A stretch of 58,984 nt of DNA from Oopsacas minuta. Its lineage: Eukaryota > Animalia > Porifera. Position 1 is the first letter of the stretch. Every line of letters starts with the position of its first letter. Where the stretch lies: positions 1 through 58,984 of the forward strand of contig JAKMXF010000038.1 in assembly GCA_024704765.1 (NCBI GenBank). The letters are read 5' to 3'. This document shows positions 22,814-55,308 of the stretch, in pieces. Made by a program: the position numbers and the translations under genes. The notes below the pieces were generated by a model. It searched no databases and was not told the DNA's origin. It saw nothing but the letters and a program-made list of their open reading frames with translations.

Positions 22814-25800
22814 ATGGGCTTTTTAGTCCAGTTAGAGTTGGAGAATTTCAAATCTTACCGAGGCAAACAGATAATTGGTCCTTTCAAGAGGTTCACTGCT
22901 ATTATTGGACCAAATGGTGTTGGTATGTAACATTCATTTTCGTAATTGTGTATTCTCTTAACCGAATTGATAATTAGAAACAGTTTGCATTCGTCGAATA
23001 CATTTTAAAACTATTTCTTATATTATCTCATAAATAGAATAACTATACCGTAGTATGGAAATACTTTTCAAGATTTTGAAATGTGGAAATTACATTTTGT
23101 TGAATTTTCGTATTGGCATACTGCCGCGGTGCTTTTGTTATACAATATTATGTACACAAGTTTAATGAATACAATTGGCAAAGCCAGACATATAATAACT
23201 AGCTGTTGATTAATAGCATTACGAGATCTATAATTACGCAGCTCACGTCTATAATACTATACTACTATACACTCAATGAATATTAACTAGAAGAATTGTA
23301 GACAATTAATATCCTTCTGACACCCAACTATAATGTGTCCTGTGTTGTCTAGTATTATTCCAAATGGGTAACTGAACTCCCCGATACCCTGACCTTTCTT
23401 CCCAAACTTGTGTATCTGTTCTCCCTCCTGATTGAATACGTACACACAGTGATTACTGTCGTCACTCATAATGATGTTATAGTCTCTGTCTATGTCGAAA
23501 CGTAATGGATTGTTTGTTTGTTTGTCATCACCTTTAGTTATCAGTCTGTTGGTTAGAACGTGATCTGAATTGAACACAAACATACACGGATCACTGTCAT
23601 CTAGCACCAATACTCTGTCTCTTCTAACCTTAACGTCACATGGATGCTTAAACAAGTCTATTCCTAGTATGGAATGGAACTTGAGTTCTTGAGTTAATAT
23701 TTGAACTCTGTTATTATGACAATCACATACATACACATTGCTATTTCTATCAGAGACATCTAGACCGTGTGGATGGAGGAACTGAGCTTCTCCATTCCCA
23801 TAACTACCAACACTCTTGATCAGTTTCCTTTCTAGCTCGTACTTATTAATACAATGACCACTCCATTGTGTAACAAACACATTATTTTCAGATATACAGA
23901 TACCTATAGGTCGGTGCATCTTCTCACTGAACATAAACAGATAATCTCCATTACAGCTAAATACTTGTACACGATGGTTTAACATATCCGCTACATAAAT
24001 GTTTCCTGTTTGATAATGTATTGCAATTCCTTTGGGACAGTTCATTTCTCCTGGAGCTTTCTGGTCCGCTGATTTCTTACAGCAGTAAGCTATAGGCCTC
24101 TGTTTAGCTTTGTAGTCAGGTACAACAAGCTTCACTTGAGGAGGGAAGGTGTGGATGGGAGATATGTTAGTCTGACTGTTAAGCTTAATACTCCCTAGCT
24201 GTTCTATGTCAGTCTCAAATTGATTGTTCCATTCAAACTCAATACTAATGTCTGTCTCAGCTGTTAGTTCTGTTATCTTCTTGTCAATAGCTGATTGAAT
24301 TATTTGTTCGACGTTGGTGAGTTTATTTTAAGTCAGAGTATCCTTGGTGAACGAAATGTTTTTATTCAAAGCTTCTAATAATTGATGCATTTCTTGAGTT
24401 TTGCTATTATAATCTTTCTCAATTTGATCAATATGAGAGAGGAGGATACTCTCTCTGAGTTGTAGAGCTTCATGTGACCTCTTGAAGCAGTCCCTAATCT
24501 TCTTTCTACCCTCCTTTATCTGAGTTGAGAAATTCAACTTAACTTCAGCAGTAGCCATCTGTGTATAGAATAATATTTGATACAACTTCTTTACAAATAT
24601 ACTCCTGTTCAATACAATGAATTATGCCTTGTAATATGATATTAACATATCAGATCTATTACAGTGTACGATGCTAAATAGCTCACTTCGGGATCAGCCA
24701 TTTTGACCTGAATACCAGGAATAAATTAGCAGGATTTGTATGGTTCTGTTTCTGACCAAGTAACCGGGTCTATTTTATGAATATGACGTAATAGTCACAT
24801 GAATACTTATAGGTAATATTGTGACGTCAGGATGTTACATATTGAGGGGTAGCTGTAATTCCAATTTCAAGTGAATTTTCGCCGAAATTCGAACTTGCCC
24901 AAGCCAAGCCCAAAATATCCCTATCTGCCAAAATCACTCATGGAGTCTTCCAGTATCTTCAATCAATTCCGAATATACAAACATATACGTGTGTACGTAT
25001 ATACATATGCCTGCGGGGAACGGAGTGAAAAATACATAGAGCGAATTCCTAATCAGATACAAATGAACCTTCACATATGGGGAAACAGGGAAGCATTTAT
25101 CGGCGTCCCTGGCTCCCGTTGGTGGCGGTTACACCGTATGATTGTAAATAAACAGTGATAGAACATTTATTGAATGATAATAATATATTGTAATAAAGTT
25201 ACTGTAAGGAACATGCTACACTTGACCTTTGCCCCTCTGTAGATACGATAGGTCTATCCAGTACCATTGGTTCTTGTATCAAAACTGCTTTGACTACTCC
25301 TTTCCATTCTTCTCTATCATATTTAGAAGGAGTCATATGTAGAGCTAACGAGGATAACCATTTGAAACAGTACTCTACGTTATCGTTAGTTTTCGCGGAA
25401 ATTCGACAACTTTCTAAACTGTTTTCATGTGCGAATTTTAGATGTTTCTCTTTCGGGATATTTGCTTTATAATCTAAATCTGTTTTATTTGCTACTAAGG
25501 CTACTATTGGGTACCCCTCAGCTTTTGTATTACCTCCAAAAGCTTTTTTCACTTCACTAAGCCAATCTTTGATATTAGCAAATGTATTATAGTTAGTGAC
25601 GTCATAAACTAGTAGAACTATGTCACTTCCTTGTAGATATGTTTGTAGCATTGAACCGCCTATACTTTGTCCTCCAATATCCCATACGTGTAGAGTAACG
25701 TGTGTGTTGTCACTGAGCTCAAATTGTTGTAGGAAGAAGTCTATTCCGATTGTCTGTTCGTATTTTACTCCATATGTACTGTGAGAAAACCTGTAGAGAT

Positions 25801-55308: not shown

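Follow-up and report, generated by a model that had tools for sequence, protein, structure and literature searches.

Seven genes nested in four introns of the cohesin gene SMC1 in the sponge Oopsacas minuta

The gene for SMC1, a cohesin ATPase subunit, extends over 32.5 kb of the Oopsacas minuta genome and holds seven other genes, referred to in the following as guests, in four of its introns. The guests include unrelated housekeeping genes, and all of their open reading frames (ORFs) lie wholly inside introns 1, 3, 12 and 30. We conclude that this is very probably a genuine and evolutionarily stable nested-gene locus. The window, i.e., the whole stretch of DNA that was analyzed, comprises 58,984 nucleotides (assembly GCA_024704765.1, contig JAKMXF010000038.1, forward strand), and all positions refer to it.

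Structure of the SMC1 host gene

The SMC1 gene was modeled by independent spliced alignment of six SMC1 reference proteins to the genomic sequence, using our own dynamic-programming aligner. As a control, the aligner recovered the annotated Dysidea avara SMC1 protein completely (1242/1242). The alignment reproduced the gene of 38 exons and 37 introns at 22814–55308 that had been proposed in a first-pass annotation made from the sequence alone:

22814..55308, + strand, SMC1 (cohesin ATPase subunit), 38 exons and 37 GT-AG introns
Exons 1–10 (+): 22814-22922, 26802-26878, 26942-27045, 38221-38341, 38737-38804, 38873-38963, 39040-39117, 39515-39622, 39688-39792, 39875-39960
Exons 11–20 (+): 40180-40228, 40334-40444, 43402-43616, 43860-44073, 44311-44351, 44448-44618, 45227-45485, 45906-46064, 46223-46291, 46379-46468
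Exons 21–30 (+): 46540-46583, 46734-46824, 46903-46933, 47077-47162, 47367-47444, 47640-47723, 47950-48006, 48065-48121, 48183-48260, 48385-48459
Exons 31–38 (+): 51735-51847, 52270-52377, 52714-52774, 52830-52883, 53243-53367, 53426-53495, 53848-53958, 55246-55308

The coding sequence is 3711 nt long, running from the ATG at 22814 to the stop codon at 55306-55308 with no internal stops, and the 1236-residue translation contains a Walker A motif, a hinge, an LSGGEKT signature motif and a Walker B motif. Its identity is 53.5% with Dysidea SMC1A-like and 51% with zebrafish SMC1A. The motif set, the length and the closeness to named SMC1A proteins all fit an SMC1. The neighbor on this strand, an intronless gene ending 326 bp before SMC1, is SMC2 and not a second SMC1; in an SMC2 tree, the source organism appears as a long-branched animal lineage beside a demosponge. 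Another SMC1 sequence, P0005, which is 68% identical in the hinge exon, was dropped as a close relative, since its own relatives are hydrozoans, and was kept as a generic SMC1 reference. Several micro-exons placed by the aligner (31431-31464, 54381-54383 and matches within the 469-aa ORF of relative D, see below) were rejected on inspection, being unsupported by the other references.

The four large introns are as follows:

22923..26801, + strand, intron 1, 3879 bp, phase 1, with guests NHL-psi and RAB28
27046..38220, + strand, intron 3, 11175 bp, phase 2, with guests LRRK, PPIL3 and the 469-aa gene
40445..43401, + strand, intron 12, 2957 bp, phase 0, with guest XYLT
48460..51734, + strand, intron 30, 3275 bp, phase 0, with guest NHL copy 6

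The remaining 33 introns are 55 to 1287 bp long, with a median of 150. These four sizes, and the limit of 1287 bp for the others, match those of the first-pass annotation to the base, and its observation that every intron above 2 kb holds a gene was borne out, with seven guests in the four introns. This is what would be expected in a compact genome where introns are short unless they bear a gene. The borders of intron 3 were the same with five of the six references; the sixth placed a 34-nt exon inside it.

Intron 1 cuts the codon for Gly37 of the Walker A motif (GPNGV|GKS) in phase 1. That this intron splits Walker A had been noted before and is correct, but the split is no peculiarity of this gene, because a demosponge has an intron at the same position and phase. 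Indeed, 30 of the 37 SMC1 introns, including 1, 3, 12 and 30, have position and phase in common with the SMC1 gene of Dysidea avara, in which no nested ORF of at least 150 aa was found. From the shared positions and phases it follows that the guests entered ancient introns.

The seven guest genes

The guests comprise seven units, six antisense and one sense relative to SMC1:

23287..24558, − strand, NHL-psi (NHL-repeat copy), Pfam NHL, single tblastn alignment
25199..26354, − strand, RAB28, exons 26354-26239 and 25790-25199, 235 aa
27616..33918, − strand, LRRK-type ROCO kinase, single exon, about 2100 aa, first ATG at 33918
34160..34645, − strand, PPIL3 (cyclophilin-like 3), single exon, 161 aa
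36237..37646, + strand, 469-aa gene, the sole guest on the host strand
40759..42744, − strand, XYLT (xylosyltransferase), single exon, 661 aa, Pfam Branch and Xylo_C
49235..50497, − strand, NHL copy 6, intact, 420 aa, Pfam NHL

Together their coding sequence amounts to about 14 kb, approximately four times that of the host, within the 32.5 kb that the host spans. Their number, identities and orientations had been given correctly in the first-pass annotation, as judged from Pfam, structure matches and model coordinates, while two details could be refined: the NHL copy in intron 1 is a full homologue with one stop, and RAB28 has two exons and is thus not intronless. The bias toward the antisense strand (six of seven) is not significant by itself, and it is possible that the guests do not represent separate events. 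Rfam and tRNA scans of the window gave no matches. A scan for bacterial promoters and terminators was discarded as irrelevant to this genome.

NHL-psi is a 423-codon homologue to which all 420 residues of NHL copy 6 could be aligned by tblastn, with 79% identity, and it is interrupted by a single in-frame TAA at 24328-24330 (codon 77). The DNA of NHL copy 6 is 85–90% identical to the other NHL copies in the window, and the paralogues cease to resemble each other within about 50 bp of the ORF ends. RAB28 consists of a P-loop exon and a second exon separated by a 448-bp GT..AG intron; its best match among solved structures was Rab-28 (E 2.6e-44), followed by the next Rab at 1e-21. The LRRK protein has Ank, LRR, Roc, COR-A, COR-B, protein kinase and WD40 domains by Pfam. 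PPIL3 matched human PPIL3 structures over its full length (E 1.4e-84), and the best named matches of XYLT were animal XYLT1/2, at 35–39% identity. No Pfam domain was found in the 469-aa protein. Atlas features and model output may point to an NHL-type beta-propeller, which we take as a lead only; a BLASTP comparison with NHL copy 6 gave no significant match.

RNA and read evidence

RNA evidence came from Logan contigs of one run (X2), made from the sample probably used for the assembly. The contigs were placed on one 6-kb stretch of SMC1, with introns 1, 3 and 30 lying outside it. Two DNA runs (X1 and X3) from the same sample as the assembly served as controls for the RNA joints.

The X2 contigs showed GT..AG joints for introns 4, 5, 6, 9, 10, 11, 12 and 13, and these joints were absent from X1 and X3 over the 6-kb stretch. 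Introns 7, 8, 9 and 14 were confirmed by loose ends of X2 contigs. Depth in X2 was 2000–8800 in exons, compared to 4–50 in introns. For a guest-bearing intron, direct joining of the flanking exons was observed with intron 12, which contains XYLT: the joint 40440>43398 (shifted by 4 nt, a cut at 40444|43402) has GT..AG borders and a depth of 3210, and was found in two X2 contigs. At intron 3, one RNA contig runs 30 nt (k−1) beyond the acceptor at 38221 and stops at 38250, the pattern that a splice branch would produce. Thus, when the 37 junctions listed in the first-pass annotation were compared with the RNA, those of introns 4–6 and 9–13 were confirmed by joints, and the long junction 27045-38221 was represented by a contig break at its acceptor. 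Removal of introns 1, 3 and 30 is indicated indirectly, by colinear homology, by conserved GT-AG exons of identical size in relatives, and by the contig break at 38221.

Separate transcription was seen for XYLT and is likely for the 469-aa gene. Unspliced RNA contigs cover XYLT from 40726 to 42795 at a depth of about 230–255, and a 2027-nt RNA contig with a depth of 156 would run from about 36224 to 38250, across the 469-aa gene, if it is colinear with the genome. In the stretch containing LRRK, PPIL3 and the 469-aa gene, 98% of sampled words were present in the RNA run, compared to 33% for an exon/intron stretch. On the DNA side, Logan contigs leave only an intron 7 repeat of the 6-kb stretch uncovered. 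In addition, a contig of 13.6 kb from a DNA run extends back from 38577, supporting the continuity of the locus.

Conservation and turnover in relatives

The locus was compared with those of four relatives, here called B, C, D and E. The SMC1 protein of the window is 91–92% identical to that of relatives, with equal exon sizes. In C, the protein is 92% identical and 38 exons of equal size were found, with exon 38 aligned in part. Intron 1 of C contains NHL and RAB28, intron 3 contains LRRK, PPIL3 and the counterpart of the 469-aa gene, and intron 12 contains XYLT. Relative E has the same layout, except that intron 1 holds two NHL copies. A core of six guests is thus found in the same introns in the two relatives mapped over the whole gene (C and E), and B and D, which were mapped in part, agree.

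In intron 1, C and E have the same guests as the window; the readable part of B, where intron 1 is not closed, is consistent with this. Exon 1 of B ends at the same GPNGVG|GTATGT site; the seeming fusion of its exons 1 and 2 was rejected as ORF read-through past this conserved GTATGT donor. In C, D and E, intron 3 contains the same genes as in the window. XYLT lies within intron 12 in C and E. In D it comes after exon 12, and the 17 kb beyond XYLT yielded no exon 13. NHL-psi has an intact counterpart in B and E and a broken one in C. RAB28 is 85–86% identical in B and C, LRRK 73–75% and PPIL3 85–89% identical in C, D and E. Orthologues of the 469-aa protein are approximately 40% identical in D (519 aa) and E (480 aa), and that of C is truncated to 176 aa.

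Other guests differ between lineages. Intron 30 is only 58 bp long in C and 69 bp in E, which makes NHL copy 6 a lineage-specific gain. Conversely, a septin/AIG1-like GTPase is present in intron 28 of C only, as the NHL copy in intron 30 is present in the window only. In B, NHL and RAB28 are duplicated and accompanied by a zf-BED ORF, and in D, intron 12 is enlarged and intron 8 has been lost. The comparison of intron contents suggested in the first-pass annotation therefore yields an order of insertion: the six core guests are common to the relatives, and later gains differ by lineage.

Alternative explanations

One alternative is an artefactual layout, caused by a chimeric contig or by repeats collapsed at the NHL copies. 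The NHL copies in intron 1, in intron 30 and upstream of SMC1 are 85–90% identical, which could favor such errors, and the DNA runs derive from the same sample as the assembly. However, gene order is alike in four other, independently assembled relatives, the intron 12 joint in RNA agrees with the assembly to the base, and DNA contigs span the 6-kb stretch apart from the intron 7 repeat, with the contig of 13.6 kb extending back from 38577. We consider an artefact extremely improbable. Also very improbable, in our view, is that SMC1 is not one transcription unit, with exons 1–3 being a relic or a separate unit and the mRNA starting past the 11-kb gap, for example from the 469-aa region into exon 4. 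The RNA contigs, placed on one 6-kb stretch, gave no direct joint 27045>38221, and the 2027-nt contig (depth 156), if colinear, would cross the border between intron 3 and exon 4 unspliced. However, exon 4 has a depth of about 3500, more than 20-fold that of the unspliced contig, and the contig break exactly k−1 after 38221 fits a second, spliced predecessor. Moreover, the N-terminus with Walker A, which the protein cannot do without, is encoded by exons 1–3 in the same frame as exon 4; these exons retain intact splice sites, and their sizes are unchanged in C and E, as is that of exon 1 in B.

A third possibility, which would leave the nesting itself untouched, bears on guest expression: the guests might be matured from longer precursors by spliced-leader trans-splicing, in an operon-like manner. 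Candidates would be the co-oriented antisense train PPIL3-LRRK-RAB28-NHL and, on the plus strand, SMC2-SMC1, where SMC2 ends just 326 bp short of SMC1 and the SMC1 ATG is preceded by ttttAGaa. The XYLT contig stops at 42795 by an acceptor-like ttaatttAG, with 11 unmatched letters, and the contig over the 469-aa gene, if colinear, would start at ≈36224 by the AG at 36224-36225, 11 nt before the ATG. On the other hand, in Aphrocallistes predicted leaders were present on only 4% of long reads (PMC10282587). At the SMC1 locus, a leader sequence was neither seen nor matched, and an AG near a start codon is common by chance in AT-rich DNA. On balance, we regard trans-splicing as possible but rather doubtful.

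Comparison with other nested genes

Several genes reside in one large intron of Drosophila dunce, and intron 27b of human NF1 contains the guests EVI2A, EVI2B and OMG. The SMC1 locus resembles these in having several unrelated, mostly antisense guests with few exons in a large, conserved host, from whose transcript they are spliced out along with the intron, but whereas dunce and NF1 have very long introns in large genomes, the SMC1 host covers only 32.5 kb. In insects, the tim2-2mit host-nested pair has been kept for about 300 Myr (PMC3786989). There, too, an antisense guest has long been conserved in one given intron of a conserved host; however, tim2-2mit involves one guest, while in SMC1 six guests in three introns are conserved jointly, with turnover in other introns. 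No figure for the record number of guests per host was found in PMC3192792.

Nested genes have been published as common in glass sponges, with glassin as an example (PMC10282587), as the first-pass annotation had stated. In Aphrocallistes vastus, 2432 nested genes make up 12.4% of all genes (Francis et al. 2023, PMC10282587). Given this figure, the view that seven guests in one cohesin gene are extreme did not hold up; the SMC1 locus is one well-documented example of an arrangement already known as common in glass sponges. The A. vastus genome is compact, its genes are mostly single-exon, complete genes lie within introns of hosts with several exons, and many of these nests are conserved between species; automatic annotation misses them (PMC10282587). 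All of these traits are shown by the window. In contrast, the SMC1 locus, the mapping to ancient introns and the gain of guests in individual lineages are absent from that paper.

In contigs of the relatives, ORF-type gene calls recover no more than small fragments of SMC1, and a search for related proteins brought up no full-length SMC1 from this clade. It is plausible, as had been expected, that the locus would be broken up by automated annotation. An essential cohesin gene can be missed or fragmented where a pipeline forbids nested genes, which bears on core genes reported as "missing" from glass sponges. The locus also offers a base-resolved case of the build-up of nesting in a compact animal genome, in which separate lineages independently acquired guests in different introns, on top of a shared six-gene core.

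Origin of the guests

We propose that SMC1 has kept the intron-rich structure of an early animal gene, with 37 introns, and that four ancient ones were colonized by separate genes. NHL and RAB28, LRRK with PPIL3 and the 469-aa gene, and XYLT would have entered before the sampled relatives split, while later gains and duplications would be lineage-specific. The host is probably transcribed across all 32.5 kb, with GT-AG splicing removing the guests together with their introns, as observed for intron 12 and presumed for introns 1, 3 and 30. The guests would produce their own transcripts, as seen for XYLT; the same is likely for the 469-aa gene and presumed for the others. Because six of the seven are antisense, their processing signals would not be read on the host pre-mRNA.

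Entry presumably took place at the DNA level by transposition or rearrangement, or by retroposition. As for marks of a retrogene, six guests lack introns and RAB28 has one; neither a poly(A) remnant nor an A-tract was detected around the NHL copies. In older insertions, the marks of retroposition would have disappeared.

SMC1, with 37 introns, and the adjacent SMC2, with none, form a natural contrast for testing what keeps introns from being lost. One speculative idea, which we consider unlikely, is that the guests act as intron anchors, so that SMC1 keeps its 37 ancestral introns because essential genes occupy introns 1, 3 and 12. If so, long cDNA-mediated intron removal would delete guests, and only single-intron losses would be tolerated. 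The loss of intron 8 in relative D would be a loss of that tolerated type. The setting for this is a lineage that has stripped introns from most of its genes, including the adjoining SMC2 and nearly all of the guests.

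Gene content of the window

The window, a complete contig, has ≈35% G+C across its 58,984 bp and is mostly filled by long unbroken ORFs, whose identities were taken from Pfam and solved-structure searches. The features that concern us are:

18960–22487, + strand: SMC2, full-length and intronless (Pfam/structure match)
22814–55308, + strand: SMC1, the host gene
In SMC1 introns: two NHL-repeat genes (Pfam), one of them copy 6 at 49235–50497, − strand
26354–26239 and 25790–25199, − strand: Ras-type GTPase, best match Rab-28 (structure match); two exons, 235 aa, the P-loop on a separate upstream exon
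In intron 3: LRRK-type ROCO kinase with Ank, LRR, Roc, COR, kinase and WD40 (Pfam)
In intron 3: PPIL3 (structure match)
In intron 12: xylosyltransferase, XYLT (Pfam)
In intron 3: 469-aa ORF, without a family match

SMC1 gene model

Full-length SMC1 proteins were gathered with the hinge exon (45222–45485) as query. Between 22814 and 55299, tblastn gave partial matches in protein order, together spanning SMC1 residues 1 to ≈1220. Six SMC1 references were then aligned to the DNA with a purpose-written protein-to-genome aligner that allows three intron phases; as a control, it recovered 1242 of 1242 residues of the annotated Dysidea avara SMC1 protein. Depending on the reference, the gene had 38 to 40 exons, and every boundary of the large introns agreed among five or more of the six reference runs. 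In the majority model, 37 GT–AG introns separate 38 exons, and the 3711-nt ORF has its stop at 55306–55308. Its translation contains the hinge, the LSGGEKT signature and Walker B, and is 51–53.5% identical to zebrafish and Dysidea SMC1A. Intron 1 is in phase 1 and lies within the second glycine codon of the Walker A motif (GPNGV/GKS).

The four large introns measure 3879, 11175, 2957 and 3275 bp, in exact agreement with the sizes in the first-pass annotation, and the other 33 range from 55 to 1287 bp (median 150). The 38-exon model likewise confirms the earlier description of seven guests in four introns, six antisense and one sense. That description had called seven guests in one gene extreme, a view that is not upheld, since nested genes are frequent in Aphrocallistes: 2432 (12.4%) were reported there, along with 12,409 single-exon transcripts (Francis et al. 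2023, PMC10282587). The same study counted just 83 nested genes in the Oopsacas annotation, and stressed that nested genes defeat automatic annotation. Nested-gene architecture as such is thus already published for glass sponges; the SMC1 locus is real and well conserved, and the nest within it is, as far as we can see, previously undescribed.

The guests together hold ≈14 kb of coding sequence, roughly four times as much as the host with its 3.7 kb. The intron-1 NHL copy aligns across all 420 residues of copy 6, with one TAA at 24328–24330. The 469-aa protein has ≈40% identical orthologues in relatives and gave no significant BLASTP match to NHL copy 6; Atlas features and a model, taken by themselves, offer the lead that it may be an NHL-type propeller.

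Splicing of the host in RNA

The locus was present in four sequencing runs, all of one sample. Runs X1, X3 and X4 contained 95–100% of sampled words throughout the locus, as expected of DNA, while the RNA-like run X2, the single source of all RNA evidence, contained 98% in the guest-rich 27616–37600 versus 33% in 43402–48459, where exons make up 37.5%. Contigs of X2, X5, X3 and X1 were compared with one ≈6-kb stretch, 38150–44100. GT–AG joints fitting the model to the base were found in X2 alone for introns 4, 5, 6, 9, 10, 11, 12 and 13, and loose ends of X2 contigs spelled the following exon for introns 7, 8, 9 and 14. X2 depth was 2000–8800 in exons versus 4–50 in introns. Two X2 contigs skip the 2957 bp of the XYLT intron, joining 40444 to 43402 at a depth of 3210; the DNA runs do not show this joint. 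XYLT has its own unspliced X2 contigs (40726–42795, depth ≈240). The host is therefore spliced across a guest-bearing intron whose guest appears to make its own transcript.

For intron 3 (27046–38220), a 2027-nt X2 contig (depth 156) stops at 38250, 30 nt (k−1) beyond the acceptor at 38221. Such a break is expected at the meeting point of spliced and unspliced paths, and it supports this acceptor indirectly. The contig ends 30 nt into exon 4, its last 101 nt having been matched to the window; if colinear with the genome (36224–38250), it begins just before the ATG of the 469-aa gene on the sense strand. Transcription running on from this sole same-strand guest, or a 3′ UTR of it that overlaps exon 4, could account for the contig. 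In X2, intron 13 also has a minor alternative acceptor (43617–43724), the joint 43616 to 43725 having a depth of 14 versus 3492 for the main joint, 43616 to 43860.

Presumably introns 1, 3 and 30 are likewise spliced out and their guests likewise transcribed. Antisense placement would keep guest processing signals off the host pre-mRNA, and in a short-intron genome only gene-containing introns may have remained long. AGs resembling splice acceptors occur at or close to contig 5′ ends for XYLT (42793–42800) and, by inferred position, the 469-aa gene (36224–36225); another, at 22810–22811, is separated by 2 nt from the ATG of SMC1. At the 5′ end of the XYLT contig, beside its AG, 11 letters are unmatched. 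The AGs and unmatched letters hint at putative spliced-leader trans-splicing.

Age of the introns and their guests

The Dysidea avara SMC1 gene spans 30.7 kb with 41 introns, and 30 of the 37 window introns, including 1, 3, 12 and 30, match it in position and phase. No nested gene is annotated in it, nor was any intronic ORF of at least 150 aa found. The guests thus entered old, pre-existing introns, and the intron that splits Walker A is ancestral.

Related contigs (ENA, unannotated; relatives B to E) were found by SMC2 and XYLT searches and were merged.

Table. Coverage and guests of SMC1 in the window and relatives
Window: complete; intron 1, NHL (one stop), RAB28; intron 3, LRRK, PPIL3, 469-aa gene; intron 12, XYLT; intron 30, NHL copy 6
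C: complete; intron 1, NHL (broken), RAB28; intron 3, LRRK, PPIL3, truncated 469-aa-gene homologue; intron 12, XYLT
E: complete; intron 1 (7011 bp), two intact NHL copies, RAB28; intron 3, LRRK, PPIL3, 469-aa-gene homologue (480 aa); intron 12, XYLT
B: covered into intron 1 only; intron 1 (>9 kb), NHL, RAB28, NHL, zf-BED ORF, another ORF, second RAB28
D: covered from LRRK into intron 12; intron 3, LRRK, PPIL3, 469-aa-gene homologue (519 aa); intron 12, XYLT and at least five more ORFs

The window, C and E have a core of six guests in common, placed in introns 1, 3 and 12, and B and D agree where covered; since these guests are shared, the core is older than the divergence of these lineages. 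In C, SMC1 has 38 exons of the same sizes as in the window (exon 38 aligned in part) and a 92% identical protein. Intron 30 is just 58 bp in C and 69 bp in E, and C has a septin/AIG1-like GTPase within intron 28. Judged from these intron contents, the intron-30 guest of the window and the intron-28 guest of C are later, independent gains. The lineage of D has lost intron 8 precisely, which leaves exons 8 and 9 as a single exon of 213 nt. Its intron 12 is swollen to >17 kb and contains a 378-aa ORF of no known family in triplicate; exon 13 was not found in the 17 kb that follow XYLT.

Neighbouring genes and repeats

SMC2 (condensin) lies on the same strand as SMC1 with its 37 introns and ends 326 bp before it; this tandem is also present in B, C and E. 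Between species, SMC2 is just 77–79% identical versus 91–92% for SMC1; in the SMC2 tree the sequences form a long-branched clade adjoining a demosponge. Upstream of SMC2 (1–17024) lie four more NHL-repeat copies, with 70–81% protein identity to copy 6. When all NHL copies were compared together, DNA similarity was limited to the coding region, ending within ≈50 bp of the ORFs, and no flanking poly(A) remnant was found.

Intron 7 contains a 241-bp element (39229–39469) bounded by terminal inverted repeats of 62 nt that are 92% complementary. In the DNA runs its word depth is ≈100–400 times as high as in the sequence around it, which points to a MITE-like repeat of high copy number. A 105-bp stretch of intron 1 (25016–25120) is 78% identical to 54140–54239 in intron 37, and is probably a small dispersed repeat.
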